Below, piece after piece: positions 1,981-63,198 of a stretch of DNA of 64,000 nt. Each line of letters begins with the position of its first letter. Position 1 is the stretch's first letter. The notes beneath the pieces were generated by a model. The model was not told the origin of the DNA, searched no databases, and was given only the letters and a program-made list of their open reading frames with translations. Location: positions 1-64,000 of the IMG/VR virus record IMGVR_UViG_3300026521_000471; one strand, given 5' to 3'. The translations under genes and the position numbers were made by a program.

Positions 1981-2241
1981 TTAGATGAATTCTTCAGGGA
2001 ATTCATCTTCTAATGCTTCAATCATTTTTATATAAGTTTTTATATATTCCTTTGATTTTATACCTTCATCAACTAAATATACTACCATTTTTTTAGCACT
2101 TTCTACTTCGGCTTTAATAGCTGATCGTCCAATACACTCATATCCCCATATGTTTTGAGCAGTACGAGATTCTGTATCACCGGTTACTGAATCAATGTCA
2201 AATGGATAATTAATATTCACATAATATTCTTTATATTTCAT
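1981..2241 (-). CDS. small protein with C-terminal PE-tail (FPEEFI)
   Basis: ORF track; AGAGGA RBS; shared terminal motif. Confidence 0.7.
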   Translation of the reverse strand: MKYKEYYVNINYPFDIDSVTGDTESRTAQNIWGYECIGRSAIKAEVESAKKMVVYLVDEGIKSKEYIKTYIKMIEALEDEFPEEFI

Positions 2242-2260
2242 TAATCCTCTTTAATTCAAA

Positions 2261-2282
2261 TTAAGTTTTTATATGATATAAT
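2261..2282 (+). promoter_or_regulatory. class I (host sigma70-type, early) promoter TTAAG-N11-TATAAT
   Basis: Identically spaced motif recurs upstream of 12 transcription units in the window. Confidence 0.7.
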
Positions 2283-2313
2283 ACCAAATATTAAATTAAA
2301 AAGGTCTTAAAAA

Positions 2314-3339
2314 ATGTACGAACTTAAACCATATTTTTATAAAAAATTAAATATTCCCTCTGAAGAAGATTATATTTCTAAACAGTTCTCAAAAATGCCA
2401 CCATCGAATGATTATAAAGTTATAAAAGAAAAGGAACAAGAACTAAGAAAATATTATTTTAAAATAATCAACTTTATTAGAAACAAGACTAATGCTACGG
2501 ATGAAATAAATAAAAAAATTGAAAAAATGAATTTGATTCATAATTTACCATATTTTAAGAAATTACTATTAGTTACCTTTGTAGAAGAATATGAATTCCA
2601 TTCATCTCATAACCCATTTGATTATGAAACAAAACCTAAATCTTTTAAAGATATAAATGATTATCTATTGATACCTCCATTAGATTATCTCAAAAATTAT
2701 CTTGAAAAAGTTGAATCGTATAATAAGCGGTTTGACAGTTTAATTGAAAAATTGATGGTATCAGTCAATAGTTTTAGTGATAAATTTACTAAGAATAGAA
2801 TTTTAGTAAAATATCTACAAGCGATTAAGCAAGATAATAGGTTGGAATCTATTTTTTATATGGGTGTAATAAAGCCTCATATTAAATTAAAAATTTTTCA
2901 TAAAGAGAATCTTTTATTACCGTTTAATAAAAAGAGATTTGATTTAATAGAAAAACTATTTACTAAATTTGGAAATGGTAATTATTATAAGTATGGTGAA
3001 TTATGGGATGTTTATTATCAAGATGATTTGAATAAGGTATTGCAATTTAATAAAGACGAAGTGTTATCATTATATGATTTAGTAATGTCCGATAAAATTT
3101 CTGCGAGATTGAACCAACGAGTTATTTTGCTTATTTTGATAGAATTATTGAATAAGCATAATGAAAGTGAGTTAGTAGAAAATTTATTTTTGAAATTTTA
3201 TTACGTCTTTAATAAAGTAGTTGTTGGTCGAATGGATTTTGATAGCTATGAAGATGATGATCTTTGGTTTATAAGACAAAATGTATCAACTGAAACTTAT
3301 AACAAGATTGTAGAAATTATAAAGTCGAGAAAAGATTAA
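2314..3339 (+). CDS. hypothetical protein
   Basis: 341-aa ORF with RBS behind a class I promoter. Confidence 0.7.
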   Translation: MYELKPYFYKKLNIPSEEDYISKQFSKMPPSNDYKVIKEKEQELRKYYFKIINFIRNKTNATDEINKKIEKMNLIHNLPYFKKLLLVTFVEEYEFHSSHNPFDYETKPKSFKDINDYLLIPPLDYLKNYLEKVESYNKRFDSLIEKLMVSVNSFSDKFTKNRILVKYLQAIKQDNRLESIFYMGVIKPHIKLKIFHKENLLLPFNKKRFDLIEKLFTKFGNGNYYKYGELWDVYYQDDLNKVLQFNKDEVLSLYDLVMSDKISARLNQRVILLILIELLNKHNESELVENLFLKFYYVFNKVVVGRMDFDSYEDDDLWFIRQNVSTETYNKIVEIIKSRKD

Positions 3340-3692
3340 TGAAATCTGAAAAAATATATACTCCCAACGGTCTTTATTTAACAAAATCTGGAAGATTACA
3401 TATTCCTTGTAAATTCAATGATATTAGAATACCGGATAGTTTAGAAAATAAATATGTTGTAATAGTTGCATATGGTGGAAGAATCAACCTTAAAAAAGTA
3501 GGGAAAGTTATTAAGGAGATAGAACATAATTATGGTTCACAAGCTTGTTTCTTACCTCCTAAATTTTCTACTATTAAATCGTATGAGATTGAATTACTTG
3601 ATGGTACTATCGTTTCGGATATTTATAACGATCAAGTTTATCCTTTAACGGGTGGAGAGTTAGAGGACATATTAAATTTTATACAAGATTAA
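3339..3692 (+). CDS. hypothetical protein
   Basis: TAATG coupling to the upstream ORF. Confidence 0.65.
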   Translation: MKSEKIYTPNGLYLTKSGRLHIPCKFNDIRIPDSLENKYVVIVAYGGRINLKKVGKVIKEIEHNYGSQACFLPPKFSTIKSYEIELLDGTIVSDIYNDQVYPLTGGELEDILNFIQD

Positions 3693-3710
3693 GTATAAAT
3701 TTAATATAAT
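3689..3710 (+). promoter_or_regulatory. class I promoter TTAAG-N11-TATAAT
   Basis: Motif match upstream of 3744. Confidence 0.65.
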
Positions 3711-3743
3711 TTAATATAATTTAAAAAAATAAGAAGGATTAAA

Positions 3744-4321: not shown

Positions 4322-4663
4322 ATGTACTATGAAACACATATTACTTACAATAAACCTCTTTCACATATACGTAATCTACTACCAAATTTAAAATCGACAA
4401 AGCAACAAATTATTTCTGTAAAAATTATTAAAACTGAATCAATGACAGAAAATAATAAAGGTGTTTATTGTGTATTAAAAGATTATAATTTTGAAACTAT
4501 TGGTTTTATATCGACTACTCGCAAAGCTGCTTATGATATAGCACTTAAACATTGTGTACTTCCAGAAGAGAATAGTAGACTAATATATGATTTTAAAGCT
4601 ATGGATGATAGAAAAGAAATTTTAGAGACAGTTTCTAAAGATTTTCCAGAGTTATTAATATGA
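4322..4663 (+). CDS. small protein with PE-tail (FPELLI)
   Basis: Terminal motif; its C-terminal ~25 aa resemble the next ORF (F.A.DD.....L..(V/I)S..(F/Y)PEL). Confidence 0.7.
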   Translation: MYYETHITYNKPLSHIRNLLPNLKSTKQQIISVKIIKTESMTENNKGVYCVLKDYNFETIGFISTTRKAAYDIALKHCVLPEENSRLIYDFKAMDDRKEILETVSKDFPELLI

Positions 4664-4989
4664 TTACTGTGTTGGAACTATTATATCTTAATCGTACAGA
4701 CCAAACTATTCTACATACATTATATACTGATAATGTTTTGATAGGTATGGATTTATATGAAGTTGATGAAGAATTATCATCAAAAGCGATAACAGAATCA
4801 ACTTCTATTAATGTATCAGATCAGTTTGAAAAACTTATTATTAAAGGTGAACGTAAAGCTGTATTGATAGAAGCATTAAAAACATTTAGACCCCCAAAAG
4901 GGGAATGTGTAGAAAAATTTGATGCCGAAGATGATAAAGAAAAAATACTAAAAATAATTAGTGATGAATATCCAGAACTAATTATTTAA
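4660..4989 (+). CDS. small protein with PE-tail (YPELII)
   Basis: ATGA overlap; terminal motif. Confidence 0.7.
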   Translation: MITVLELLYLNRTDQTILHTLYTDNVLIGMDLYEVDEELSSKAITESTSINVSDQFEKLIIKGERKAVLIEALKTFRPPKGECVEKFDAEDDKEKILKIISDEYPELII

Positions 4990-5250: not shown

Positions 5251-6222
5251 ATGAATACTATCATAGAAACGATTTTAGAAGAAAGATACCCAGAATATAA
5301 AATGTTACCGATCATTGAAGATTTAGATATGGATAATCCACGAGAAGATTTCTGGGATAATCTATCTGAAAAAGAGGTTTATGATATTAATAAAGAATAC
5401 CTAGAAAAAATCGCTAATCCTAAATATGATTATCTTGTGTGTTGGGAACCTGGTAGATTAAATGAAGATGAAAAAATTACCGATTTTAACTCTCTTTATG
5501 AATTTGATTATAGCTGGTGGGATTATCAAAAGCAGGCTAGATATGATAGTGTTACAGAATATAAAGAATGGATGGAAAAGGGTAGCGAATATTGGACACC
5601 TGAAAGAGTAGCTACAACTATTAATGAATTAAATGCAGAATATGAAAATGGTTATTCAATTTATTGTACAGGAGATTGGATTCGTTTAATTGAATATGGT
5701 ATTTTTAGATACGCTCAAATTATCTCTGCTAAATGGTTTATATATTATCGTTTAGAATCTTTAATTTCAGATCTACAAGATAAATATTTGCCATATTCTC
5801 TTAATGAAGAAAAGATGGATTTTACCCAGCTTTTAAATGAACCAGATCCAACTAAGAAATATAAAGCGAACGGTAGAGAATTAGAATTAGAATCTTTACA
5901 AGAAAAAATTAGAGAATATGAGAGAAAACAATTAGGACGAATTATAGATAATGAGATGAAAAAATATAATTTTTCTGGTAAAGTATTTCGAGAAGATAAA
6001 GGTTACAATGAAGGAAAAGATTTTGATCCTTTTACAAGTTATATTTTTTGGGATGAAGAGTCATTAAAAAATATAAATCCTAAATCATTTGTTAAAGATA
6101 TTAATGCTAATTTGGAAGATATTGATAAATTAGAGTCTATTATAAAAGACTTAGAACATATAGTTGAAGATGATTTTATGAGATTTTATAATGCAAATAG
6201 AGATAGATACTTATCAAAATAA
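5251..6222 (+). CDS. hypothetical protein
   Basis: 323-aa ORF. Confidence 0.7.
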   Translation: MNTIIETILEERYPEYKMLPIIEDLDMDNPREDFWDNLSEKEVYDINKEYLEKIANPKYDYLVCWEPGRLNEDEKITDFNSLYEFDYSWWDYQKQARYDSVTEYKEWMEKGSEYWTPERVATTINELNAEYENGYSIYCTGDWIRLIEYGIFRYAQIISAKWFIYYRLESLISDLQDKYLPYSLNEEKMDFTQLLNEPDPTKKYKANGRELELESLQEKIREYERKQLGRIIDNEMKKYNFSGKVFREDKGYNEGKDFDPFTSYIFWDEESLKNINPKSFVKDINANLEDIDKLESIIKDLEHIVEDDFMRFYNANRDRYLSK

Positions 6223-6574
6223 TAAATTATATTATGGTATGAAAGGTTCTGATCAACGTACTAGATTATTGGCATTTAGGCGACAAAAATTCATGAATAC
6301 ATTTCTAGATGATTACCCTGATATTTATTTAAAATTACAAACTAATGAACTTATGTTTCTAAAAATTATATATCAAATGAGAAAATTAAAATTTAATGAT
6401 ATGTCGAAGTTAGTATATTCAATGAATAGTAGTTATTTAGAAGTAGTGAATACTAAAGAGTTTAAACTTTTAATTAAAAGGTTTAAACATTACTTAAAAT
6501 ATGGTGAAAATACAAAAGAAGAGCTAAAAGAAGTTATGAGTATAAATTTTAGAGCTCTTCCATCATATTGGTAA
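6191..6574 (+). CDS. hypothetical protein
   Basis: ORF track. Confidence 0.55.
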   Translation: MQIEIDTYQNNKLYYGMKGSDQRTRLLAFRRQKFMNTFLDDYPDIYLKLQTNELMFLKIIYQMRKLKFNDMSKLVYSMNSSYLEVVNTKEFKLLIKRFKHYLKYGENTKEELKEVMSINFRALPSYW

Positions 6575-8420: not shown

Positions 8421-8678
8421 TTAAATAAAAAATTCGGGATATTTCTTTATCCCTGTATCTATCAAATATTTATCAGATTTTTTAATAAAATAAAACCCTT
8501 TTTTATAGCTCTTAGCAAGGTAACTATAAAATTCACTTTCTATATTAGTTTCAAATTCTTGAATATTATCAAAATTATGAGTAATATTGAAAACATTTAT
8601 ATATGGTTCTTTCTTATTATCAATATCTATACGTATTTCCATATCACTACCATACTTTAGTTTTATAAACCATTTCAT
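8421..8678 (-). CDS. small protein with PE-tail (YPEFFI)
   Basis: Terminal motif; coupled array. Confidence 0.7.
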   Translation of the reverse strand: MKWFIKLKYGSDMEIRIDIDNKKEPYINVFNITHNFDNIQEFETNIESEFYSYLAKSYKKGFYFIKKSDKYLIDTGIKKYPEFFI

Positions 8679-9037
8679 ATGAATAGCTCTGGAAATTTAT
8701 TAATTAGATAATATTTATTTTTATTTATGATTGAATATTTCCAATCCAAATAAATAGCTTCCATATAAATCAATGATAGAATATCATCTTCCCCTCGTTT
8801 TTTTAAAAGACCTGTTTCTAAGAATCTTTTTAGTCGAATTTGTTTTTCTAATGATGTAGTCTGTTCGATAATATTAAAGTGTTCATCGAGAGTAATAAGA
8901 GTTAGTTCATAGACACTTTTATCCATATCAAGTAATTCTTGCTTTATACTAGTATTTGATATATCTTGAATAAAAGCCTCTTTATCATCTTCCGTCATAG
9001 AATTATACAGTCGTCTAATACGTTTTAAAAGAATCAT
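8675..9037 (-). CDS. small protein with PE-tail (FPELFI)
   Basis: Terminal motif; coupled array. Confidence 0.7.
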   Translation of the reverse strand: MILLKRIRRLYNSMTEDDKEAFIQDISNTSIKQELLDMDKSVYELTLITLDEHFNIIEQTTSLEKQIRLKRFLETGLLKKRGEDDILSLIYMEAIYLDWKYSIINKNKYYLINKFPELFI

Positions 9038-9327
9038 ATAAAATCCTCAGGACACATATTTGCAGCAGTATTTATAAACGGTTTAAGAGTTCTAATAGCA
9101 TCTCTTGACATATTATTTTGTCGTTTATATAATGCTGCAATTATTTTATGAAATTCATTTTCTTCTTCAATTTTTAAAACTTGATATACTACTGTATCAA
9201 ATCCTCCACCAGGATTAAAATGATTTTCTTTTCTTTTATAATTTGTTTCGTATGGTATTTTTGTTATATAAAGATCTAAAATAAAATCAGATTTACCAAT
9301 AACTGCGATTTTCCATAATTTTTTCAT
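9034..9327 (-). CDS. small protein with PE-tail (CPEDFI)
   Basis: Terminal motif; coupled array. Confidence 0.7.
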   Translation of the reverse strand: MKKLWKIAVIGKSDFILDLYITKIPYETNYKRKENHFNPGGGFDTVVYQVLKIEEENEFHKIIAALYKRQNNMSRDAIRTLKPFINTAANMCPEDFI

Positions 9328-9626
9328 AAGTAATACTCCGGAAATTTATTTAGAGGATATGTTTTATCAAATTCATATTTTAGATTTTCAAGCGTATTGA
9401 CTAGCAAAGTATATTTTGTTGCTATTGAATTATTTAATGTTGGACAATCTAAAGACCCTTTAGCAATTTTTTGCTGAAACGTATATTCTTTAAGAAAACG
9501 ATTAGGTGACATAATTTGTAAGACATCACCCAAATCTTTTTTTTCATATAGAAAATATTTCATATCTATTAATTGTGCATACTTATCTAAAATTAAAAAT
9601 GGTAGATCTATTTTATTTTCTTTCAT
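9324..9626 (-). CDS. small protein with PE-tail (FPEYYL)
   Basis: Terminal motif; coupled array. Confidence 0.7.
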   Translation of the reverse strand: MKENKIDLPFLILDKYAQLIDMKYFLYEKKDLGDVLQIMSPNRFLKEYTFQQKIAKGSLDCPTLNNSIATKYTLLVNTLENLKYEFDKTYPLNKFPEYYL

Positions 9627-9641: not shown

Positions 9642-10022
9642 TTAAACATATAATTCTGGATACTTTTCAGAAAATATTTTATAATGTTTTGTGAAATTAG
9701 TTTGTTTATCAAAATCTTCTAATCGTTTTTTAAGTTCTATATATTTTTTACGTTGTAGTTTAGTAGCATAAGCTTGAGCTTTTTCAAATTCATCTTCAAA
9801 GAAAAAAAGACCAGCACTTGCATCACAACCAAAACCACCTTCAAAATCTAAGAATTTTTTCTTTTTTGTTTCACTAATTGCTATAGTAACAGATGATTTA
9901 TAAGGGAATTGATAATCATCAACATGATGACGATATTTAAGATCCTTTGGAACAATATAAAAAGTGTATGTGCCTAATTTGAGTTCTCTTTTGAGTCTAT
10001 ATTTAAATTCGTGAAAGTTCAT
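9642..10022 (-). CDS. small protein with PE-tail (YPELYV)
   Basis: Terminal motif. Confidence 0.7.
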   Translation of the reverse strand: MNFHEFKYRLKRELKLGTYTFYIVPKDLKYRHHVDDYQFPYKSSVTIAISETKKKKFLDFEGGFGCDASAGLFFFEDEFEKAQAYATKLQRKKYIELKKRLEDFDKQTNFTKHYKIFSEKYPELYV

Positions 10023-12130: not shown

Positions 12131-12460
12131 TTGTTTCAAGAAGATGAAGAAGATTTATCTATATTAGAATTTTATAAACGTTTACCATATAATAAAATGA
12201 AAGAATGTGAAATTTTTATAACACCTGAGAAAATATATGGTATTCAATATGCTGATGATGCAGATACACGTATTTTGGCGGAATCATTAAATATTCTCAA
12301 AACATTAAAATCTAATGAGCTTAAAGACAAAATTGAACTCCATAGGACTGAGGGTGTATGGCGAGAGTTTTATACGTTCAAAAATGTAGTAAAAGCAATA
12401 AGAGAATATTTGCAGTTGCGACCAAATTTAATAGAAGAGTATCCAGAATGTATGATTTAA
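12131..12460 (+). CDS. small protein with PE-tail (YPECMI)
   Basis: Terminal motif. Confidence 0.7.
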   Translation: MFQEDEEDLSILEFYKRLPYNKMKECEIFITPEKIYGIQYADDADTRILAESLNILKTLKSNELKDKIELHRTEGVWREFYTFKNVVKAIREYLQLRPNLIEEYPECMI

Positions 12461-12690
12461 ACAATTTAAATAAAGGTGATATAATTGAATTTCAAATGTC
12501 CTTTGGAAAACTCCACGGTGTTATAGAAGTTAAAACAGAAGATTTAATACATGTTCGTAGTTTTTCTTTGGATAAAACTGCACATCGATGGTTTATGTTT
12601 TATCAAGAAACTTTTAAACATGTAAAAAATAATTATGGGGCTCAACTTGAAGACGACTTCATTACATCAAATCCTGAGAGGTTTATATGA
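12448..12690 (+). CDS. small protein with PE-tail (NPERFI); start moved from 12358 to ATG 12448
   Basis: GAAGAG upstream of 12448; avoids a long overlap. Confidence 0.65.
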   Translation: MYDLNNLNKGDIIEFQMSFGKLHGVIEVKTEDLIHVRSFSLDKTAHRWFMFYQETFKHVKNNYGAQLEDDFITSNPERFI

Positions 12691-12938
12691 AGAATATATA
12701 TGAAATAGCCAATGAATGTTATCCTATGTTATTAGTACACCCTGCAACAAACTGGGAACAGGAAATTCATAATTATAGAGCTCTAATTATCATAGAGATT
12801 TCAAAGCATTACCCTGATATTCTTGATAACTGTGAAGATTGCGTTAAAGTTATTCAAAATTCTGATGTACTAGAATATAAATTTAGTGATAAATTTATAA
12901 AACGGATTTTAGAAAAGTATCCTGAAGCATTAATATGA
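12687..12938 (+). CDS. small protein with PE-tail (YPEALI)
   Basis: Terminal motif; ATGA overlap. Confidence 0.7.
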   Translation: MKNIYEIANECYPMLLVHPATNWEQEIHNYRALIIIEISKHYPDILDNCEDCVKVIQNSDVLEYKFSDKFIKRILEKYPEALI

Positions 12939-13246
12939 AGTGTTCTGAAGAAGAAGCGATCGCTGTTAATTTTTTTAGAAAATTACCACCGGAAGTAAAG
13001 GTTGAAATTGATGAATATTTTTTACCTGAATTATCTGATGATACAAAAAATGCCCTTTTAAAAAATATTACTTTAATTGGTGAAGTTTTTAAAATGACAC
13101 CTAATTTAGCAGAATATTATACAAAATACGCTCAAGATTGTGATTACTTTCGATTGTTAGGATTTTGGGAAGAAATTAGTACTGTACTTGTAACTATATT
13201 TAATTCAACTGATTACTATGAAAGATACCCAGAATATTTGGTTTAA
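12935..13246 (+). CDS. small protein with PE-tail (YPEYLV)
   Basis: Terminal motif; ATGA overlap. Confidence 0.7.
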   Translation: MKCSEEEAIAVNFFRKLPPEVKVEIDEYFLPELSDDTKNALLKNITLIGEVFKMTPNLAEYYTKYAQDCDYFRLLGFWEEISTVLVTIFNSTDYYERYPEYLV

Positions 13247-16229: not shown

Positions 16230-16293
16230 AAGTCCCTCAGTTTGTTGATTTATCAACTTATTTATTTTCGGATTTACTTTCTTTAATTTATGA

Positions 16294-16315
16294 TTAAGGT
16301 CTAATATAATATAAT
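16294..16315 (+). promoter_or_regulatory. class I promoter TTAAG-N11-TATAAT
   Basis: Motif match upstream of 16338. Confidence 0.65.
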
Positions 16316-16337
16316 ATAAAAAATTAAAAAAGGATAT

Positions 16338-16737: not shown

Positions 16738-17064
16738 ATGAAATTAAAGGATATTAATTATACTGGTATCTTTTTTAATGATGGTATGCATATGACTTGG
16801 AATTATGGATTACCTAGAAAATATCCTAGTAACATTCAATCTGGAGAGCTTGCAGAAGTTACTGTAATTGGGAAATATGAAGATGACCAAGTAGCGTGTT
16901 GGGTTGTTAAATATGGAAGATATACTCATCAACCGTCAGGAACTTTATTGCATGTTACTACTAAAGTTACTAATGGTGGTAAAGCTGTAATGAGTGGTCA
17001 AAGAGCAACAAAGAATGGTTATGAGAAAATTAAATCGTTTAAATTAAAAGGTGTATGGAGATGA
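16738..17064 (+). CDS. 2H phosphoesterase (cyclic phosphodiesterase-like)
   Basis: Two HxT motifs (HMT, HVT) followed by NGGKAVMSG; near the RNA ligase. Confidence 0.6.
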   Translation: MKLKDINYTGIFFNDGMHMTWNYGLPRKYPSNIQSGELAEVTVIGKYEDDQVACWVVKYGRYTHQPSGTLLHVTTKVTNGGKAVMSGQRATKNGYEKIKSFKLKGVWR

Positions 17065-17324
17065 ATTTAAAAAAGAGTGACATAGTCTTATTTAATTCTA
17101 ATATGTCTAATAATAAAATAGTTAAAACCACAGGTATTGTTATGGACAATGAAGATATTAATGGTATTATTAGTATTCAAGCTGTTGATGAAGTTGGAAG
17201 TATACGTTCTATTTTTGGAGCCTTTACATCGAATCCAACGGACATCCATAAGAGAAATATTATATCAGTCTTGGGTAATCTAAATGATTTAGTCATAGAA
17301 AAATTCCCTGAATATACAATTTGA
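17055..17324 (+). CDS. small protein with PE-tail (FPEYTI)
   Basis: Terminal motif. Confidence 0.7.
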   Translation: MEMNLKKSDIVLFNSNMSNNKIVKTTGIVMDNEDINGIISIQAVDEVGSIRSIFGAFTSNPTDIHKRNIISVLGNLNDLVIEKFPEYTI

Positions 17325-17727: not shown

Positions 17728-18390
17728 ATGAAAAAATATCCAAGAACATTTCATTTTCAGTTTTCTCCAGAAGTACATGATGATGATAAAGTTATATCTA
17801 TGAGATATCTTGGAAATTTTCTACAAGACGAAATAGTTATCCTAGAAAAATTAGATGGTGCTAATAGTTGTCTGAAAGGTCATCAAGGTGTATTTGGAAG
17901 AAGTCATACTTTACCAACTAAAGAACCTTGGTACGACCACCTAAAAGGTTTATACTATTCTAAATTGGATAACCTGAATCCGGACTATTGGTATTTTGGA
18001 GAAAATACCTATGCTATTCATAGCATTAAATATACTAATATGGATAGTTATTTTTATCTATTCGCTATCTATGATACAGTTAATAAAATATGGCTGTCTT
18101 GGGATGATTTAGTAGAAGAAGCAAAAAGAGTTGATATACCTACTGTACCTGTATTATTTAGAGGTACAGTTATCTCAATGGCTGAAGTAAATAAATGGAT
18201 GGATAAACACATTACCGATGAATCTCAATTAGGTGGTGAATTAGAAGGTTTTGTTATGAGAGTAACAAAAGCAATCCCAGGAGATAAATTCAATGAGTTT
18301 GTAGCAAAATACGTTAGAAAAGGTCATGTGCAGACTGATGACCATTGGACAAAAAATTGGAAACCTCAAACTTTAAAGGTAAATAAATGA
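17728..18390 (+). CDS. ATP-dependent RNA ligase family protein
   Basis: KYPRTFH, motif I EKLDGAN, FGEN, FYLFAI, motif IV EGFVMR, motif V AKYVR. Confidence 0.85.
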   Translation: MKKYPRTFHFQFSPEVHDDDKVISMRYLGNFLQDEIVILEKLDGANSCLKGHQGVFGRSHTLPTKEPWYDHLKGLYYSKLDNLNPDYWYFGENTYAIHSIKYTNMDSYFYLFAIYDTVNKIWLSWDDLVEEAKRVDIPTVPVLFRGTVISMAEVNKWMDKHITDESQLGGELEGFVMRVTKAIPGDKFNEFVAKYVRKGHVQTDDHWTKNWKPQTLKVNK

Positions 18391-18635
18391 GTGCATCGGA
18401 CTACTTAGATCCAGAAATTAAAGATTTTGTTAGAGGGTATTCTAGAATAAATGTTGAATTAAAAAGAATACCTCCTAAGCTTTTAAAAACTAAGTTGGTT
18501 TCTTCATATGAGTCTGTTTCTTCAGCATCATATTTAGGTGATATTGAAAAAAATAATATGTTATGGTGTATAACTCAAGCTATTGAGGAATTGCATAATG
18601 AGATTTCAGAAGTTTATCCAGAGATTTGTATATGA
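18387..18635 (+). CDS. small protein with PE-tail (YPEICI)
   Basis: Terminal motif. Confidence 0.7.
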   Translation: MSASDYLDPEIKDFVRGYSRINVELKRIPPKLLKTKLVSSYESVSSASYLGDIEKNNMLWCITQAIEELHNEISEVYPEICI

Positions 18636-18898
18636 ATAATTTATCAAAAATAAAAGAGAAAGTTGAAAATGAATTAGAGAAGGTATCTAGAGAGATCTTC
18701 GATATGAAGATAGTAAATGATATGACAATAAGATTCTTTCAGATGAATTATACTAAATGTGAAATTAAACCTGATTATATTAAATGTATGAAATGTCACA
18801 ATATGGAAGATCCTTTTAAATCAACCAATATAGAGATAATTCTTTCAGACGCTTTTATAAATGAGTTAAAAAAACATTACCCGGAAGATCTAATATGA
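18626..18898 (+). CDS. small protein with PE-tail (YPEDLI)
   Basis: Terminal motif; likely start ATG 18632. Confidence 0.7.
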   Translation: MYMNNLSKIKEKVENELEKVSREIFDMKIVNDMTIRFFQMNYTKCEIKPDYIKCMKCHNMEDPFKSTNIEIILSDAFINELKKHYPEDLI

Positions 18899-19161
18899 AC
18901 ACTTTAAAAGAATACGTGAATTATTGTGCACAACTTTTTAAAGCCTTTAGATTTAAAGAGACTGAAATTAGTACTATATTTTTATCAAAATTACAAAAGA
19001 AGTATCCATTAACTAAAAATCTATCAAAAGATGATTTTGAAATACATTTTGAATACTGTATTAGAGAATGGGATGACGTTAAAACTAGACATTGCTTTAT
19101 TGATATTAAACACTCTCTAGTAGATAAAATTTCTGAGGAGTACCCCGAATCATGCATATAA
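18895..19161 (+). CDS. small protein with PE-tail (YPESCI)
   Basis: Terminal motif. Confidence 0.7.
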   Translation: MNTLKEYVNYCAQLFKAFRFKETEISTIFLSKLQKKYPLTKNLSKDDFEIHFEYCIREWDDVKTRHCFIDIKHSLVDKISEEYPESCI

Positions 19162-19406
19162 AAGATTTTATAGATAGTATGGAACATGCACTACATCAAG
19201 ATAATATAATATCTAAGGAAGAAGTGGTTATAAAATACGTAGAAGCCGTATATCCAAAATTAAAAAATAAAATTCCTAAAAATGATATAATTATTACTGA
19301 AAATAAAATAACATTAAACTTTATCCCTCCAACAAAATATACTGTATCATTTAGAGAAAAGTTTTATGACGCATTTAAAATACATTATCCTGAATACATG
19401 ATTTAA
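19152..19406 (+). CDS. small protein with PE-tail (YPEYMI)
   Basis: Terminal motif. Confidence 0.7.
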   Translation: MHIKDFIDSMEHALHQDNIISKEEVVIKYVEAVYPKLKNKIPKNDIIITENKITLNFIPPTKYTVSFREKFYDAFKIHYPEYMI

Positions 19407-28895: not shown

Positions 28896-29219
28896 TTGAA
28901 AAAGGTTAAATGCATGAATCAAATAAAAGATAGAATTCCGTCAGAAGTTGCTATGAGCAATTTTGTAATTATATATCATAAAGGTAGAAAAGTTTTTAGA
29001 ATATTTGATCAAAGTCGTAGAAGTAAATGGAATAAGGTTTTAAAATATTGTCAAAAATCATTAGAATATGCTGCATCTGATGAAATGATTACTAGAACTT
29101 TAAACGAATATGAAAAAAATCAAGCTTTATACGCTATATTTTATACAGATAATACTGATGAATTAGAAATACGTTCAATGGATGATATGTATAAACAGCA
29201 TCCAGAAATTTTCATCTAA
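28896..29219 (+). CDS. small protein with PE-tail (HPEIFI)
   Basis: Terminal motif; likely start ATG 28914. Confidence 0.7.
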   Translation: MKKVKCMNQIKDRIPSEVAMSNFVIIYHKGRKVFRIFDQSRRSKWNKVLKYCQKSLEYAASDEMITRTLNEYEKNQALYAIFYTDNTDELEIRSMDDMYKQHPEIFI

Positions 29220-36813: not shown

Positions 36814-38268
36814 ATGAATGAAAATGATGTTAAAGAAGAAATTAAAGAAGCTTGGAAAGATTTAAAAAACGGTACAAAAGTTAAAGCTAAGCTTACTGAA
36901 AAAATGGATGAGAAGCTCGACGGTTTAGTAGCAGCAGCAAAAGCTGGAAATTGGAAAACTCAGCTGGAAGAAGCAATAGTACAGATGATTACTTATAATT
37001 ATTCAAGTAATGAAAGTTTAATGTGGTATGGACATTTAGTAACTCAATGTGAAATAAAAAGAGATTTAACTATGCCAAGTCCTGCTGGGGTAAGATTTAT
37101 GTTTAATAAATACGAGATGTTTATTAATCCTTTACTTTTTGGTTTATATTCAACCGATGAACAAATTGCTATATTGAAACATGAAATGTTACATATTATC
37201 AATTTGCACATTGTAAGACAAAAAGATAGAGACCATAAAAAATGGAATTATGGTACTGATTTATCTATCAACCAATTAATCCCAAACATTCCTGAAGATG
37301 GATTACAACCTGAAAAATTTGATTTTGCAAAAAACCTTAATGCAGAACAGTATTATGATATGATACCTACAAACTATGAGAGTGAAGAACCTCAAGAAGG
37401 TAATGAAGACGGTGAGGGTGGTGGAAGTTGTTCTGCACAAGGTTCCGGAGATGGAGAGCCACAAGATGGTGATGGTTCTGGAAACGGTGATGGTTCTGAT
37501 GTAATTGATGATGAGAAAAAACTTAAAGATCTAATCTCCCAAGCATTAAATGCAGCTCAAGAAGGAATGATTGGTGATCATGGTAAGTGGCAAAATTCTG
37601 AAGGTGATGAACAGGCCGCAAAAGAAATTACAAGACAGATGTGTGAAACAGCTACTAATAAATCCAGAGGTATGACACCAGGTGAAGTAGAAGGAGCAAT
37701 CCAATTACTTAAAATGCAGGAGCAAATTAACTGGAAGAAAGAGCTGAGAAGAATTGTTGGTAATAGAAAAGCATTTTCTAAACTTACAATTAAGAAAAAT
37801 GATAGAAGATTTCCAGGTCGTAAGGATTTAAGAGGTAAAACAAAAGATCATACAAAAGATATTGTAGTTATCTTAGATGTATCGGGTTCTATGAGTGATG
37901 AGGAAGTTCTCTATGGTTTAAATGAAATTAAGGCTATTGCAGAAAAAGCTAGAGCTGGGGTTACTATTATTCAAGTTGATACAGAGCCAAAAATTGTAGA
38001 AGATTTTGATCCAAAAGCAAAAACTTTTAATCGTAGAGGTTATGGTGGTACTTATATGACTCCTGGAATTGAAATGATTAAGGAACAGAAATTAAAATGT
38101 GACTGTATTTTGTGTATAACTGATGGTTACATTGAATCAACTTTTGATATTGATTTACCAAGAGTACCATTTATTTTCTTAGTTACACAAGATGCAGATA
38201 ATTTATCTATTGATGTAGGTTCATATCCGAGAATGAAAAAACATACATTGAAAATTGGTGATAAGTAG
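36814..38268 (+). CDS. DUF2201-type HExxH metallopeptidase plus VWA domain protein
   Basis: LKHEMLHI, WNYGTDLSIN, G/D-rich linker, MIDAS DVSGS, GYGGT, TDGY. Confidence 0.9.
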   Translation: MNENDVKEEIKEAWKDLKNGTKVKAKLTEKMDEKLDGLVAAAKAGNWKTQLEEAIVQMITYNYSSNESLMWYGHLVTQCEIKRDLTMPSPAGVRFMFNKYEMFINPLLFGLYSTDEQIAILKHEMLHIINLHIVRQKDRDHKKWNYGTDLSINQLIPNIPEDGLQPEKFDFAKNLNAEQYYDMIPTNYESEEPQEGNEDGEGGGSCSAQGSGDGEPQDGDGSGNGDGSDVIDDEKKLKDLISQALNAAQEGMIGDHGKWQNSEGDEQAAKEITRQMCETATNKSRGMTPGEVEGAIQLLKMQEQINWKKELRRIVGNRKAFSKLTIKKNDRRFPGRKDLRGKTKDHTKDIVVILDVSGSMSDEEVLYGLNEIKAIAEKARAGVTIIQVDTEPKIVEDFDPKAKTFNRRGYGGTYMTPGIEMIKEQKLKCDCILCITDGYIESTFDIDLPRVPFIFLVTQDADNLSIDVGSYPRMKKHTLKIGDK

Positions 38269-38524
38269 AGTTATTATGTGGGCTTATAAGTTTACAGATT
38301 CAAGAGGAAATGATTACTATGAGTTTCCTTTTGAAATATCTAGTTCAACATTTCTTAATTCAAATGAATATCAAATAGTAAATACTGAAAGAGAAGCTGT
38401 TAAAGAATTTAAAAAAGCAATTGATTTCAATATACCATATAAAGCTCATTATGAAGATATGCAAAAACTTAATAAAGAATTGGCTAAATTATATCTTAAA
38501 AAGTATCCGGAGATATTTATATAA
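38255..38524 (+). CDS. small protein with PE-tail (YPEIFI)
   Basis: Terminal motif. Confidence 0.7.
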   Translation: MVISRVIMWAYKFTDSRGNDYYEFPFEISSSTFLNSNEYQIVNTEREAVKEFKKAIDFNIPYKAHYEDMQKLNKELAKLYLKKYPEIFI

Positions 38525-38865
38525 TGTATCATTTTAAATTAAAACTTAGAGATATTCACAAAAATGCGTATAGATCATTTTTATTTCCAGAAAAAGCACC
38601 TAAAAATTCTACTAGTCATTGTGCGAAAATCAATTCGTTATATACAGAAGGTTGGTTTGCTGATAAATCATTGATAGAATCTGAAATCCACTTTATTAAA
38701 TCTGTTAAATTTTTTTTAAATGGTGCAATTAAAGATTTAAAGAAAAATAACACTTATACAGGGTGGGATGAATCATATCTTAAAGATGATGTTGCATTTT
38801 TAGAAAATGTATGGAAATTAACAATTCAAAAATATGCGGATAAATATCCGGAGCTAGTATTATGA
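38524..38865 (+). CDS. small protein with PE-tail (YPELVL)
   Basis: Terminal motif; TAATG overlap. Confidence 0.7.
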   Translation: MYHFKLKLRDIHKNAYRSFLFPEKAPKNSTSHCAKINSLYTEGWFADKSLIESEIHFIKSVKFFLNGAIKDLKKNNTYTGWDESYLKDDVAFLENVWKLTIQKYADKYPELVL

Positions 38866-39101
38866 GTTTTATCAAATTCACATTTAAAAATAACAGCTAT
38901 GCTATAGGACGTTTATTTTCAAAGATTGGAAAAGATAACTGGGCAAATATTGAAATAGTTAAGCCGTATAATGGTAGAAATGAGACTTTAAAAAAATATT
39001 ATACTAAGGGTAGAACATTTCAAGCTGATACATCTAGTACTTCAGATTATGTTAAAACTGCATTTATAGATCCAAAGTCTCACCCAGAATATTTTATTTA
39101 A
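38862..39101 (+). CDS. small protein with PE-tail (HPEYFI)
   Basis: Terminal motif; ATGA overlap. Confidence 0.7.
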   Translation: MSFIKFTFKNNSYAIGRLFSKIGKDNWANIEIVKPYNGRNETLKKYYTKGRTFQADTSSTSDYVKTAFIDPKSHPEYFI

Positions 39102-39106
39102 AAAGG

Positions 39107-39469
39107 TTGTTGATGTATTTCTCATATCAAGCACATACTTTAGATGGAAAATCTCTTAAAATTTATTTACCATTACCAACTAAAAAATCACAATATGAAG
39201 ATAGACTGAAATTTTATAAACAAATAGATGATAGAAAATTATATGTCGTGAAAGATACTAAAGATATTATTAGAGAATGTCATATACATAATACTTTAAA
39301 AGAATCAATAAATTATATAAGAAAAGATCTAATATATTCGATTGAATGGATAAGTGATGATAAAAATGCACCTCCTGGTAATCCTGATGTTTATGTGGCT
39401 AAATGTAGAGATGCTTTAACTGAATTAGAAAATAAATATATCAATAAATTCCCGGAGATATTCTTATGA
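39107..39469 (+). CDS. small protein with PE-tail (FPEIFL)
   Basis: Terminal motif. Confidence 0.7.
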   Translation: MLMYFSYQAHTLDGKSLKIYLPLPTKKSQYEDRLKFYKQIDDRKLYVVKDTKDIIRECHIHNTLKESINYIRKDLIYSIEWISDDKNAPPGNPDVYVAKCRDALTELENKYINKFPEIFL

Positions 39470-39654
39470 TTGTAGATGTAGATAAAAAGGCAATCCAACA
39501 ACAAATAAAGTTTTTAGTTAAAATAATAAACCAATATCAAAAAAGATTAGAAACTGAACCTCAATTTTTAACTAGAGAAGTTGAAGAAAATTTAGAAAGA
39601 GCTAAAGCAAAATATGATTATATTATTAAAGAATATCCAGACTTAATCATCTAG
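39466..39654 (+). CDS. small protein with PE-tail (YPDLII)
   Basis: Terminal motif; ATGA overlap. Confidence 0.7.
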   Translation: MIVDVDKKAIQQQIKFLVKIINQYQKRLETEPQFLTREVEENLERAKAKYDYIIKEYPDLII

Positions 39655-47120: not shown

Positions 47121-47377
47121 CCGAAATAGCCTTTTATTCAATATTGCAACGCCCTCATAAAGATTTCATGGAAATTATTAAAAGGTCAGAAGAAGGTTTC
47201 GCTATTAAATATCCGGATATTTATTTAAATAGGGTTCTTACTAAACAAAAAATGACCTGTTCACATCCTCCATTTTTAGAAGGAAAATCTATAAAGATAA
47301 TCAATAATTCTGCGAGTTTTATTTCATATAATTAAAAAAAATTGTAAAATTATTAATAAATATATTAAGGATTTACA

Positions 47378-50428: not shown

Positions 50429-50713
50429 ATGAATACTAGTAGAGAAAGTTTTCAATTAGATTTAGAACGTACTACATCAACAGAATTAGAAGAAGTCGTA
50501 ATATGTTCAAAATGTAATGGTTATGGTTCTTCACAATTAAAAGGTGATTTTATTGTTTACGGGAATGATACAGATCTTAAACAAAATAATATTTGTTCAT
50601 CTTGCAATGGTACTGGAAAATTAATCAAACAAACCGTAGTATCATTTGTATCATTTGACCCAAATTTAGCAATAAAAACACATATCGTTTCAAATCCAGA
50701 AAATTTTATTTAA
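50429..50713 (+). CDS. DnaJ-type CxxCxGxG zinc-finger protein with PE-tail (NPENFI)
   Basis: CSKCNGYG, CSSCNGTG. Confidence 0.75.
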   Translation: MNTSRESFQLDLERTTSTELEEVVICSKCNGYGSSQLKGDFIVYGNDTDLKQNNICSSCNGTGKLIKQTVVSFVSFDPNLAIKTHIVSNPENFI

Positions 50714-50757: not shown

Positions 50758-51024
50758 ATGTTTATCAAAATGGAATTTGAAGATGATTATTATTTGATCG
50801 TGCCACCAGACTCAATAAATAATAATTTTTTAATTAAAGTAATATCTGAAAAAGATAAAATTGATTTTCCACATCTACATAATCATATTTATAATAATAA
50901 AATTAAGGCTGAAATTGAATGTCTTAAATTGGAAATAATGCGTACTAATAACGAAGAAACTAAATCTAGATTTAGAGAAATGTTATCTGTCTATACAAAA
51001 TTATATCCTGAATATATTATATAA
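50758..51024 (+). CDS. small protein with PE-tail (YPEYII)
   Basis: Terminal motif. Confidence 0.7.
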   Translation: MFIKMEFEDDYYLIVPPDSINNNFLIKVISEKDKIDFPHLHNHIYNNKIKAEIECLKLEIMRTNNEETKSRFREMLSVYTKLYPEYII

Positions 51025-51035: not shown

Positions 51036-51410
51036 ATGAAACGAACATTAACAAGTACATTTGATAATATGGTTGCATTGATTAAAAGAAAAGAACCTCA
51101 TATCGATGCCATTAAAAAAGCAGAAGAAGAATTCAAGAATCAAAATATCAAATTAAAATACTATGTTACTACAATAGGTATGCCAAAATTATCAGATATA
51201 GCAGAAGGTACATTAGTCAAAACACCTGCTAAGTATTTTGATAATTTGATACAAGCAAAATTATTTCAAGATAAAATAATTTTAGATGAAAGTAAGAAAA
51301 ATATTGATGAGCGACATATTTGGTTTGATAGTATTACAAATGATGAACTAAATTTTGTCAAAAATGAATTTAATAATCTAATAAAGAATTATCCAGAATA
51401 TGCAATTTAA
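51036..51410 (+). CDS. small protein with PE-tail (YPEYAI)
   Basis: Terminal motif. Confidence 0.7.
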   Translation: MKRTLTSTFDNMVALIKRKEPHIDAIKKAEEEFKNQNIKLKYYVTTIGMPKLSDIAEGTLVKTPAKYFDNLIQAKLFQDKIILDESKKNIDERHIWFDSITNDELNFVKNEFNNLIKNYPEYAI

Positions 51411-51651
51411 TAATATAGAAATAGGTTCTATAATTATTACAAAGTATGGTGCATTTAAAGTATTTGCTTCCCCAAGTATGAAACAAATCAATGGAAATAA
51501 TATATTATCCATACCATCAATAAACTTATTACATAAGGCATCAAAACCATTTGATATTGGTATTAAATATATACCTATTAGTCATATAATAGAGAAATTT
51601 AATATCTCTATCAATGAATTTATAAAAGAATACCCGGAGAAAATTATATGA
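51400..51651 (+). CDS. small protein with PE-tail (YPEKII)
   Basis: Terminal motif. Confidence 0.7.
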   Translation: MQFNNIEIGSIIITKYGAFKVFASPSMKQINGNNILSIPSINLLHKASKPFDIGIKYIPISHIIEKFNISINEFIKEYPEKII

Positions 51652-60442: not shown

Positions 60443-60447
60443 AGGTT

Positions 60448-61047
60448 ATGGGATATAGAGTCCCTCGACCCAAGAAACCGAATTTTGATAAATTTTCAAA
60501 TAACTTAAATACAAAAATAGAGACCGGTTTAAAAGAACGAATTTCTGAGCATATTAATAACTCGGTTAATTTTAAAGATGATTTACTTAAATACGTAAAA
60601 CCACAAGATAACATAAAAGGACACTCAATGAATCAATTCTTAACATTAGATATTGGTAGTAATAAAGCTACAATAGATCTTTCAAAAGTTCGTAAGCAAG
60701 GACTAATATTTGAAAAATCAATGTTTGGTAAAAAGCCTAAAATCGTTATTTATTATAATGACCGTCCAGATACACCAGAAGTAAATTTTGAACTTAATTC
60801 TGAAGAAGAAGCTGAAAAAGTGTACAACGATATTCAAAAAAAATTAAATCGTTGGGCTGAAGACTCAAATTCTGCAAGATTACAATTACTTGAAAAAGAA
60901 CTAGATATTATGAAAGAGCAAAAAGAAGCTCTCCTTGAAGAAAAACAGGTTCTAATGGATGTATTTAATCAATTTAAAGAAATGATGCAAATTATGGAAG
61001 ATGATACAAAAACTTCATCATTAGTTGATGTTATTAAAGAAATGTAG
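60448..61047 (+). CDS. hypothetical coiled-coil protein (alternative start ATG 60628)
   Basis: AAAGGA precedes MNQFLTL. Confidence 0.6.
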   Translation: MGYRVPRPKKPNFDKFSNNLNTKIETGLKERISEHINNSVNFKDDLLKYVKPQDNIKGHSMNQFLTLDIGSNKATIDLSKVRKQGLIFEKSMFGKKPKIVIYYNDRPDTPEVNFELNSEEEAEKVYNDIQKKLNRWAEDSNSARLQLLEKELDIMKEQKEALLEEKQVLMDVFNQFKEMMQIMEDDTKTSSLVDVIKEM

Positions 61048-62554
61048 AATGGAAAATATTGAGTATAGACCTAGATTTAAATCATATCATATCAATATAC
61101 CAACTATTATAGGTGGAGTTATAGACTATTCGCCTATAATGGATAAAATCGCTTCACCAAATATAAAATTTACTGATAATTTTAATAATAATTTCGATAA
61201 GCAAATAGTAATATCTAATCTTAATAATTTAAGTACCGATTTACTTATCGAAATTAGTATTTATTATAGAGGTGAGGTTTTAAACGTTAGATCTATAATC
61301 AATAGATACGATTTAATAGATATTAGTGAGCCGATAATTCTATTAAATGACCATTTAGAAAGAATGCTTTATAGTTTAAAAGAAGCTATGTATAATTTAT
61401 CACCCTTTAAGGATGAATTAGATAGAATATATAGAGAATTATATATGAATAGAACATTAATAAGCAATGATTATCTTGTTAATCGAGAATTTGAATTAAA
61501 GAAACGCATTGATAACTTAGAAGATATAATGAATAAAGAATTTGAAAGGATGATTATGAGTGAAACATATTTTGAATCTAGTCAATCTATCGACAAACCT
61601 CAAATTTCAAAAGAAGAAGAAACATTTGAAGAAATTGAGTCTAGACTTTTATCTAGTTCAGACACATTTAAATTAACTATCAAAACTATTAAAAGATTAG
61701 ATAAAGAGCGAACTGATAAATTTGTATTACCCTTAGAAAGAGGTAAAGATGGTGATGTTGATAAATTTGAACATTTAACAAAACAGCCATTTAGCTTCTT
61801 AAATTATAATGGTGCAACTTTCTGTGTGAATTTAAATACAGGTATTCATAGTGATTGGGATGAAGATAAAGATGAGAGTGTTTGGATAAGTAGCGTGAAA
61901 CGGTATTATGATTTATATAGTGAGAATACTAAAAAAATCAATACTAAAAAAACAGAAATTTATGAACGTATCTCAAAAGTTTCTGACTCATTCAAAGTGT
62001 TATCTGAACAAATAGATTATCTTAAAAAACAGTTTGAAGATAGAAGTAAGAAGTTTAAGAATTCAACATATGTAAAATTTTTAGGTGAACGAACTATTAA
62101 AAATATTGAAACTATACGCACTGCAGAATCTATTGCCAAAAGAAAATTAGAGGTACTAAAAAATAAAAATTTAATCAAGCGACCTATAGCTTTTTTTGAA
62201 AGAGCCGCAACATTATATCTTGGTAAAACAGGCGAAGATATTATGACCGATATGTATAAATTGGGTTATACAAGTAAAGATATTCATATATTAGCTATCG
62301 AATATTTATTCTTTTTACTAAAGGTAGTTAAATTAAATGAGGAAGGTGGACATTATACATCACCAATTTTACCTATTCTAAATGGTGAAGACACTAATAG
62401 TCTATCTTATATTGAACCAGATCTTCTTAGACTTATGGCAAATCATATGTTTATTCATACTATAAACATTACAACTGATTATAAATTTGATGACCCAGTT
62501 AAAAAAGAAGAAGATCCTATTGAAATTCCTAGTATAGTTTACGTTATGGAATAA
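61025..62554 (+). CDS. hypothetical coiled-coil protein (likely start ATG 61049)
   Basis: ~500-aa ORF. Confidence 0.7.
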   Translation: MMLLKKCRMENIEYRPRFKSYHINIPTIIGGVIDYSPIMDKIASPNIKFTDNFNNNFDKQIVISNLNNLSTDLLIEISIYYRGEVLNVRSIINRYDLIDISEPIILLNDHLERMLYSLKEAMYNLSPFKDELDRIYRELYMNRTLISNDYLVNREFELKKRIDNLEDIMNKEFERMIMSETYFESSQSIDKPQISKEEETFEEIESRLLSSSDTFKLTIKTIKRLDKERTDKFVLPLERGKDGDVDKFEHLTKQPFSFLNYNGATFCVNLNTGIHSDWDEDKDESVWISSVKRYYDLYSENTKKINTKKTEIYERISKVSDSFKVLSEQIDYLKKQFEDRSKKFKNSTYVKFLGERTIKNIETIRTAESIAKRKLEVLKNKNLIKRPIAFFERAATLYLGKTGEDIMTDMYKLGYTSKDIHILAIEYLFFLLKVVKLNEEGGHYTSPILPILNGEDTNSLSYIEPDLLRLMANHMFIHTINITTDYKFDDPVKKEEDPIEIPSIVYVME

Positions 62555-62566
62555 AAAAGGGTTATA

Positions 62567-62899
62567 ATGATTAATTCAATAGATTTTACAAAAGTACGAC
62601 CCAACCAAACATTATACTTGGTTCGATATAGTCAAAAAGAACATCCTGATGTAATTGATATAAAGTTTAAAGGATATGATAAGACAAAGCAAATTATAGA
62701 ATATGAGTATGAAACCCCAAAAGGATTAAAACTTAAACGTATTCCAATACGCAAGGCTAATTTCCGTATTTTTATAGATTCTGATGAGATGGCTAGAACA
62801 TTATATGATTGCTTTGAAAAACGAGAGATTAAACCGTCTGAAAAATATACTGAAATATTTAATCAAAGTCAAAATAATAGACCAGAAATATGGATATAA
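62567..62899 (+). CDS. small protein with PE-tail (RPEIWI)
   Basis: Terminal motif. Confidence 0.7.
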   Translation: MINSIDFTKVRPNQTLYLVRYSQKEHPDVIDIKFKGYDKTKQIIEYEYETPKGLKLKRIPIRKANFRIFIDSDEMARTLYDCFEKREIKPSEKYTEIFNQSQNNRPEIWI

Positions 62900-63198
62900 T
62901 ACCTGTAAGTTATGATAATGGTATAGGACGATTGTTAGTTTCTATTGAATCTATAACTGGGACATTTGCATATCAAAAAGTTATTAATAGACATATAATA
63001 GAAACGCTTAATTGGTTTTATGATGATATAGCATACACACCCCATAAAATAATTAAGGGATTGATTATAGAAAAAGCAGCACTTGAAAAGAATATTATAT
63101 TATGTCATTCATCAAAATATTATGCAGCTATTCTATTTACTATAAATCATTTAGAAAATAAATTCCCAGTTGAAACATATCCAGAATTATATATTTAA
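62890..63198 (+). CDS. small protein with PE-tail (YPELYI)
   Basis: Terminal motif. Confidence 0.7.
   Translation: MDIIPVSYDNGIGRLLVSIESITGTFAYQKVINRHIIETLNWFYDDIAYTPHKIIKGLIIEKAALEKNIILCHSSKYYAAILFTINHLENKFPVETYPELYI

Follow-up and report, generated by a model that had tools for sequence, protein, structure and literature searches.

A recurrent C-terminal Pro-Glu tail on small proteins of an uncultured jumbo phage: common handle or structural cap?

Why do 29 small phage proteins, mostly unrelated in the rest of their sequence, end in the same few residues? The question is raised by the first 64,000 nucleotides of the viral contig IMGVR_UViG_3300026521_000471 (224,467 bp, 27.8% guanine plus cytosine (GC)); this whole stretch, positions 1-64000 of the contig, is called the window here. 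A preliminary description of the DNA had listed 29 open reading frames (ORFs) that end in Pro, then Glu or Asp, two variable residues, and Ile, Leu or Val, and had interpreted the shared tail as part of a modular addressing system. Our analysis covered ~73 kb of this genome and ~20-kb pieces of its relatives. One half of the proposal, an end-anchored peptide element on unrelated small proteins, is borne out. The other half, addressing, is less secure, and three results favor a structural role. We put the probability that the tail is a common handle, read in trans, at roughly 45%.

The tail and its carriers

All 29 listed ORFs are present and end as stated. The ORF set was mechanical and comprised every ORF of at least 60 amino acids (aa) in the window (n = 146). 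The ending P-[E/D]-x-x-[I/L/V]-stop occurs on 29 of these 146, whereas shuffling the residues within each ORF (2000 trials) produces a mean of 0.13 such endings and a maximum of 2. The host lineage gives no background either: none of 550 ORFs from 242 kb of Campylobacterota loci ends in P[ED]xx[ILV]. The typical tail consists of six residues, [Y/F]-P-E-x-hydrophobic-[I/L/V]-COOH, and position -6 is usually aromatic, as first described, with Tyr or Phe in 23 of the 29 tagged ORFs. The fuller pattern [YF]PE..[ILV] is found 23 times in the window ORFs of at least 60 aa, 22 times at the very C-terminus. We found no description of the tail in Pfam, NCBIfam, PHROGs, PADLOC, PDB or the literature searched. 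The pattern is new to these sources, as the preliminary description had supposed.

The tail is the end of a longer pattern. In a right-justified alignment, hydrophobic residues recur at -6, -9/-10, -13/-14, -17 and -20, and polar residues at -7, -8, -12, -15 and -16. The conserved unit is usually ~20 residues long, with a predicted amphipathic helix followed by Y/F-P-E and a short hydrophobic end. A helical stretch in front of the tail had been proposed before; it is present in most carriers, as part of a unit longer than claimed, but it does not extend to the zinc-finger family, in which the tail N-P-E-N/D-F/L-I is preceded by a non-helical stretch.

The tagged proteins of the window are 62-126 aa long. 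They account for 29 of its ~69 genes of 55-130 aa, and for about a quarter of its ~118 genes. The tail is confined to proteins of 62-143 aa, with isoelectric points of 4.4-9.7 and without membrane segments. As noted at the outset, the recognizable enzymes lack it: no window protein longer than 130 aa ends in the tail.

The codons of the tail vary. Pro is encoded by CCA (14 tags), CCT (7), CCG (6) and CCC (2), the residue at -4 by GAA (18) and GAG (10) for Glu and once by GAC for Asp, and Ile by all of ATA, ATT and ATC. In the last seven codons of seven ortholog pairs there are 8 synonymous and 6 non-synonymous changes, the latter only at variable positions. Because the codons vary synonymously, selection must act on the peptide. 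In addition, the chain ends directly after the tail, which agrees with the earlier claim that the constraint lies on the peptide and its distance to the C-terminus. The ratio of non-synonymous to synonymous substitution rates (dN/dS) is 0.15-0.31 in five ortholog pairs formed with a sister phage. Therefore, the tagged ORFs are real genes under purifying selection.

An alternative is that the signal resides in the nucleic acid and that the peptide is a by-product. CCN-GAR at a fixed distance from the stop would then be a ribosome-binding or coupling cassette, or a DNA or RNA site. In 16 tags the stop codon overlaps or abuts the next start; the other 13 tags are uncoupled. All 10 GAG and all 6 CCG codons sit in the 16 coupled tags, while GAG is absent from the 13 uncoupled ones, which use GAA or GAC (Fisher p = 4e-4). 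At coupled junctions, CCG-GAG or CCT-GAG gives the sequence GGAG/GAGG 8-9 nt upstream of the downstream ATG. This codon choice implies that the tail codons double as the ribosome-binding site of the next gene. However, the uncoupled tags keep P-E-x-x-I with TAA stops and without a Shine-Dalgarno sequence, so that the ribosome-binding role is not the primary cause. The use of four Pro and three Ile codons, the synonymous exchange of tail codons between orthologs, and the conservation of tails across relatives of differing GC also speak against it. As a primary cause a nucleic-acid signal is largely refuted, and we give it almost no weight; as a secondary use of the codons it stands.

The tagged genes form arrays of 2, 5, 4, 4, 5, 4 and 2 genes, consistent with the tandem arrays of two to five reported at first, plus three singletons. 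Several 5' ends are uncertain, the mechanical starts being TTG. The first singleton, 1981..2241 (-) (86 aa, tail FPEEFI), is convergent with dnaJ and abuts it. Its tail-coding sequence at 1983-2008 is a perfect 10-bp inverted repeat with two GAATTC sites, which scores as a terminator-like hairpin between the two convergent genes. The other singletons are 17055..17324 (+) (89 aa, FPEYTI) and 28896..29219 (+) (107 aa, start uncertain, HPEIFI). The first array pairs 4322..4663 (+) (113 aa, FPELLI), whose stop overlaps the next start, with 4660..4989 (+) (109 aa, YPELII). A five-gene minus-strand array follows, from 9642..10022 (-) (126 aa, YPELYV) through 9324..9626 (-) (100 aa, FPEYYL), 9034..9327 (-) (97 aa, CPEDFI) and 8675..9037 (-) (120 aa, FPELFI) to its last gene, 8421..8678 (-) (85 aa, YPEFFI).

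All remaining arrays are on the plus strand. The next contains 12131..12460 (+) (109 aa, YPECMI), 12448..12690 (+) (NPERFI), 12687..12938 (+) (83 aa, YPEALI) and 12935..13246 (+) (103 aa, YPEYLV). For the second of these, the start given earlier differs from that of the mechanical ORF, which begins at 12358, but the ATG at 12448 is the plausible start and yields 80 aa. Directly after the RNA ligase gene, 18387..18635 (+) (82 aa, YPEICI) heads a four-gene array continued by 18626..18898 (+) (90 aa, YPEDLI), 18895..19161 (+) (88 aa, YPESCI) and 19152..19406 (+) (84 aa, YPEYMI). The second five-gene array opens with 38255..38524 (+) (89 aa, YPEIFI), which overlaps the stop of a DUF2201 zincin-VWA gene, and proceeds with 38524..38865 (+) (113 aa, YPELVL), 38862..39101 (+) (79 aa, HPEYFI), 39107..39469 (+) (118-120 aa, FPEIFL) and 39466..39654 (+) (YPDLII), which at 62 aa is the shortest and the only one with Asp at -4. 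Four genes lie at 50429..50713 (+) (94 aa, NPENFI), 50758..51024 (+) (88 aa, YPEYII), 51036..51410 (+) (124 aa, YPEYAI) and 51400..51651 (+) (83 aa, YPEKII). The last pair is 62567..62899 (+) (110 aa, RPEIWI) and 62890..63198 (+) (102 aa, YPELYI).

The tie between motif and C-terminus, asserted in the preliminary description, is close but not absolute, as five small ORFs hold internal copies of the module, compared with ~0.6 expected by a rough estimate. ORF 22453-22806 (+), 117 aa, has a complete internal module (helix and YPEILV) followed by 41 more residues. Variants of the form [YH]PD-hydrophobic-hydrophobic-L/I lie inside the small ORFs 6191-6574, 31849-32268, 33620-33820 and 47144-47335. 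Such ORFs may have arisen by fusion, or may be longer relatives of tagged genes.

The 9 kb beyond the window contain one tail-like ending, FPEYRI, on a 283-aa protein (L113 11684-12535, equal to positions 64573-65424). Its orthologs in the related loci L007 and L009 run 8-14 residues past FPEY. Sliding-clamp binding was considered for this protein, which has a weak DNA-polymerase-B hit, and was dropped because the orthologs continue past the motif. A second tail, of ~17 residues and ending P-K-x-V-x-D-[IL]-F-[VI]-F, is common to 6918-7442 (-) and 10238-10996 (-). These genes encode otherwise dissimilar proteins of 174 and 252 aa and flank the minus-strand tagged array. No other C-terminal match among untagged genes scores as high, and none of the other loci showed this second tail. 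Like the main tail, it places an acidic residue before hydrophobic residues at the chain end.

Bodies, predicted folds and relatives

Are the tagged proteins simply paralogs of one another? After removal of the last eight residues, an all-against-all BLASTP comparison gave no significant match among the tagged bodies. Iterative profile searches with all small ORFs of 20 phage loci sorted the 29 tagged genes into 28 sequence families, the sole related pair being 38255 and 39107 (profile E = 4e-8). When hhalign was run against the 39107-family profile (25 sequences), the scores of the other tagged bodies, apart from 38255, were not higher than those of 38 untagged small ORFs (Mann-Whitney p = 0.2). 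Between the 39107-family and 51400-family alignments, only the tail aligns. At this search sensitivity, the tagged bodies are not one homologous family. The earlier impression that the bodies are unalignable survives for 28 families with tails masked and fails for 38255 and 39107, which are homologous. Neither of the two outcomes named beforehand as damaging to the proposal, a single family or a chance frequency, holds.

Architectures were examined for three of the 28 families (39107, 51400 and 50429). The AlphaFold model of 39107, with a predicted local distance difference test score (pLDDT) of 95.5, has five strands, two long helices and the tail, the last modelled at pLDDT ~96 as a short turn of helix that follows a break. 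Foldseek searches with this model returned no significant neighbor in PDB or BFVD. The 51400 model, of moderate confidence (pLDDT 72, two sequences), shows a small Sm/SH3-like beta-barrel, a short helix and the tail, with the same local geometry as in 39107 (helix, break, one turn). The 50429 protein matches the DnaJ-type zinc finger, the only recognizable domain on any tagged protein; its CxxCxGxG pattern had been noted as a zinc finger from the start. At least three predicted architectures carry the tail. Many of the other bodies, judged by eye, combine a beta-rich N-terminus with a helical C-terminus, so that a subset may share a deep common ancestry.

Relatives show how the tail is kept. 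The sister phage, JGI Ga0256837_1000002 (221.5 kb), has the same tagged arrays; identity to it is 66-86% for tagged genes versus mostly 85-99% for core genes, and the zinc-finger gene (50429) is absent from it. Word-based homolog searches gave only close relatives, and an exhaustive profile search was needed for distant ones. Among 50,697 phage records, tblastn detected no match to the 39107 protein. The exhaustive search, which collected the family by full-length profile homology, found ~25 small proteins that are 18-38% identical, with the sister ortholog at 69%. Gene 39107 is the founder of this clade-wide family. Of the 25 aligned sequences, 22 end in P-E-x-F-[I/V/L] without extension; of the other three, one has H in place of E, one ends in F and one is truncated. 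The family's most conserved columns include P, E, F(-2) and Y(-10).

In all, distant relatives (20-69% identity) of five families were found in other phages of the clade, and in these relatives the tail stays at the exact C-terminus. A 9642 relative (L093:1464-1895) is 25% identical and keeps YPEIFV, a 12131 homolog (L096:1205-1546) ends in HPELLI, and a 51400 relative (L092:840-1097), again 25% identical, ends in YPEYLI. Orthologs of 50429 at 69% and 60% identity end in NPEDLI and NPENLI. The tail subtype of 62567, NN-x-PE-x-W-V/I, also occurs on an otherwise unrelated family in three loci (L095, L103 and L105). Tags are found in relatives of 26-37.5% GC, but they are sparse, and the core regions of three relatives have none. 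Therefore, the high density represents an expansion in this phage and its sister. At the level of sequence, the tail is a simple regular-expression signature for this uncultured jumbo-phage clade.

Handle, cap or degradation signal

The handle read in trans is the explanation we favor. Each variable head would have a task of its own, while the common tail would link all of them to one partner. Recognition by this partner would involve the P-E turn and the hydrophobic end, and probably also the free C-terminus. When the protein is unbound, its tail is likely to fold back onto the helix that precedes it. Several observations agree with such a handle. P and E are invariant across unrelated architectures, and the chain stops three residues after E. 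Only one class of proteins is tagged, and one tail subtype is present on two unrelated bodies. In addition, the tagged genes evolve fast and are nevertheless under purifying selection. The more ambitious form of the idea, a proteome-wide C-terminal address code in which one six-residue peptide couples dozens of effector heads to a single machine, is a serious but tentative proposition.

What could read the tail? The phage Hsp70 system ranks first, weakly, and as one version of the handle it is rather improbable. Its operon at 2..1980 (+) is a complete chaperone set, made up of the C-terminus of DnaK (2-205, cut by the contig end), GrpE (437-949) and DnaJ (1162-1980), with two 71-aa ORFs, one between DnaK and GrpE and one between GrpE and DnaJ; the DnaK-GrpE-DnaJ operon is conserved in the viral contigs L111 and L112. 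The phage DnaJ is class-B-like, with a J domain, a G/F region, a C-terminal domain, 2 Cys and no zinc finger. The lack of a zinc finger in DnaJ, and the presence of a DnaJ-type zinc finger as the only domain on a tagged protein, favor the Hsp70 idea. The DUF2201 zincin-like peptidase with a VWA domain (36814..38268 (+)) is a candidate partner by synteny only. It is 98% identical between the sister phages and present across the clade, and a 39107-family gene lies directly downstream of it in five phages.

Known C-terminal recognition systems offer partial parallels. In the ChAD (chaperone-addiction) element of toxin-antitoxin-chaperone systems, a short C-terminal extension on antitoxins of unrelated families is reported to be read by one dedicated chaperone (bioRxiv 10.1101/2024.02.24.581848). 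The likeness is a variable body with a shared C-terminal handle, here on 28 body families. The ChAD reader is SecB-like and encoded in an operon with the toxin, whereas here no SecB-like gene or toxin was seen: neither the 29 tagged proteins nor the 40 larger window proteins gave a SecB or toxin domain in Pfam scans. The systems also differ in that the phage chaperones are DnaK, GrpE and DnaJ, and that dozens of carriers occur per genome instead of one.

The EEVD motif of eukaryotic Hsp70 and Hsp90 is read by TPR co-chaperones and class-B J-domain proteins. It resembles the phage tail as an acidic-plus-hydrophobic extreme C-terminus at which the free end matters, and the phage DnaJ, a possible reader, is class-B-like. 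However, its sequence is different, it sits on the chaperone and not on clients, and no TPR protein was found in the window. Ligands of class II/III PDZ domains share the hydrophobic last residue, the Glu three residues before it and the dependence on the chain end, but the invariant Pro and the aromatic residue at -6 fall outside PDZ codes.

A second group of results weighs against the handle. The tail of the 39107 model is confidently placed, whereas disorder is the usual state of an unbound docking peptide. At -2, the 39107 family has Phe in 24 of 24 sequences and the PExW group has Trp, and ten different residues are found there in the remaining families of the window; this family-specific choice is easier to reconcile with cis contacts than with a single common pocket. 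In unrelated proteins, whether solved or designed, [Y/F/H]-P-E-L after a helix commonly forms the junction to the next helix, in keeping with the preference for Pro-Glu in the first helical turn. A 24-residue tail profile searched against PDB sequences returned only non-significant helix junctions (transketolase helix-K-F-P-E-L and designed helical proteins). The five internal copies stand where the chain continues. The tandem arrays, together with the paralogy of 38255 and 39107 inside one of them, point to duplication. As for a reader, the Hsp70 operon also occurs in relatives with few tags in the sampled regions, so that its co-occurrence with the tail does not discriminate, and no PDZ, TPR or SecB-like domain was detected in the 40 larger window proteins scanned.

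Most of these results would be expected of a structural cap in a hyper-divergent multigene family, in which genes were duplicated in tandem, their N-terminal parts were replaced, and no common reader exists. The P-E-capped hydrophobic turn would shield the C-terminal helix or form a homo-oligomer interface, and would be kept because small folds need a cap. The shared local geometry of the 39107 and 51400 models fits this account, and the tail may in part be such a cap, packed against the body. Multigene families of large viruses likewise consist of tandem arrays of small, fast-evolving genes, and one paralog pair is detectable here. However, such families normally have one fold, while at least three architectures here share only the last 6-20 residues, and the 28 body families lack profile-level similarity. 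The zinc-finger family has the tail without the preceding helix. In addition, P and E outrank almost any body residue in conservation, and no extension is tolerated across 18-38% identity. Such strictness exceeds the normal demand of a fold, and larger proteins never use the tail. We regard a cap without any common reader as the main rival of the handle, possible but less probable.

The handle might also serve destruction. As a special case of a tail read in trans, the hydrophobic end and a Y-P-E adaptor site would direct timed degradation by a host AAA+ protease (ClpXP, Lon, FtsH or HslUV) or a phage peptidase, and the carriers would be short-lived early effectors. In E. coli, ssrA tags and apolar C-terminal pentapeptides are classic degradation determinants; we know of no comparable degron knowledge for Campylobacterota. 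The ssrA tags, ClpX C-motif 1 and apolar pentapeptides resemble the phage tail in that they are tied to the C-terminus and have apolar last residues; each of these known signals is recognized by one protease or adaptor, as the tail would be. The phage tail is strictly C-terminal with the last two or three residues apolar, its carriers are small accessory proteins, and the phage encodes an M16 peptidase as well as the zincin-VWA protein beside an array. Against this, the tags known so far have Ala-Ala at their end and are either attached by transfer-messenger RNA or idiosyncratic, whereas the phage tail is genome-encoded with an invariant Pro-Glu and is modelled as folded. The ending required of ClpX C-motif-1 tags is not seen: the last residue is I/L/V, and -2 is F, L, I, Y or others, with Ala once. 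Furthermore, tag density shows no link to any protease or adaptor gene. A degradation signal is improbable.

Another special address would be the capsid or the cell exterior. The tail would bring small proteins into the capsid, much as cargo peptides do in encapsulins, to be injected with the DNA, or would pass them to a secretion system in the manner of the C-terminal signals of type I and type IV secretion. A single terminal motif on many unrelated, fast-evolving small proteins is the pattern of translocated effector sets, and the tagged set fits it. The end itself, three hydrophobic residues behind an acidic one, also resembles some type I secretion signals, which we take as a lead only: these signals combine such an end with upstream glycine-rich repeats and an ABC exporter, and in the phage the end pattern is present, while domain scans found no repeat or transporter domains. 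Conversely, the tagged genes lie among replication, repair, chaperone and signaling genes, the window has no structural genes, no link to a capsid, portal or transporter was found, and ~30 cargo species from 64 kb would be unusually many. Packaging or export is very unlikely. The PEP-CTERM/exosortase signal was rejected as well, as only three residues follow P-E, hydrophobic runs are absent, and there is no NCBIfam CTERM match.

The phage, its host and the meaning of the tail

Which phage uses this tail, and in which host? The window has no DNA similarity match among cultured phages. Its gp32-like single-stranded DNA-binding protein (SSB) is only ~28% identical to SSBs of Rak2/121Q-type jumbo phages, and has ~65 metagenomic relatives at 55-89% identity, several of them on 220-306 kb contigs. 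Therefore, the phage belongs to a sizeable uncultured jumbo-phage clade. TnpB was tried as a host tracer and gave no match; EF-Tu was used in its place. The phage EF-Tu (42531-43682) is 75-82% identical to EF-Tu of Sulfurimonas, Sulfurovum, Arcobacter and related Campylobacterota, and 99.7% identical in the sister phage. Judged by this gene, the sequence points to sulfur-oxidizing Campylobacterota as the host lineage.

Besides the tagged genes, the window encodes an M16 peptidase, the DUF2201 zincin-VWA protein, TnpB, an RNA ligase, RlaP, PAS/GGDEF/HDOD proteins and an actin. No tRNA genes were found in it, and a promoter and terminator scan was uninformative, with fewer promoter-like sites than in shuffles. 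The Alp7A/ParM-like actin gene (43739-44713) is 97.5% identical in the sister phage and present in the distant relatives L007 and L009. PAS-GGDEF, Tll0287-PAS and HDOD proteins are encoded at 26842-28137, 15042-16346 (-) and 39643-41301 (-), and the PAS-GGDEF/HDOD set appears to comprise components of cyclic-di-GMP-type signaling. An RNA ligase (17728-18390), a nucleotidyltransferase (21815-22450) and an RlaP-type protein (24928-26436) together suggest an RNA-repair module. TnpB (IS605 OrfB/Cas12f-like) lies at 45833-47023. The sister phage has its TnpB, 33% identical, elsewhere (L004 8305-9822), inserted inside a tagged array between the orthologs of 38862 and 39107. The relatives L009, L093 and L007 carry Acb1-like and zeta-toxin-like kinase genes.

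If the tail is a structural cap, it illustrates the extent to which small phage genes can diverge and yet retain a minimal element of folding, and it provides a marker for tracing their families. If, instead, it is a handle read in trans, a pull-down with a 15-residue peptide would reveal a hub for about a quarter of the region's genes, and dozens of proteins of unknown function would be sorted into one functional class. It would also be a phage example of a position-specific protein address code and could supply a portable tag for work in Campylobacterota. Should the address code prove true, the tail would be a prokaryotic-virus counterpart of modular targeting in the style of KDEL, PTS1 or the F-box.

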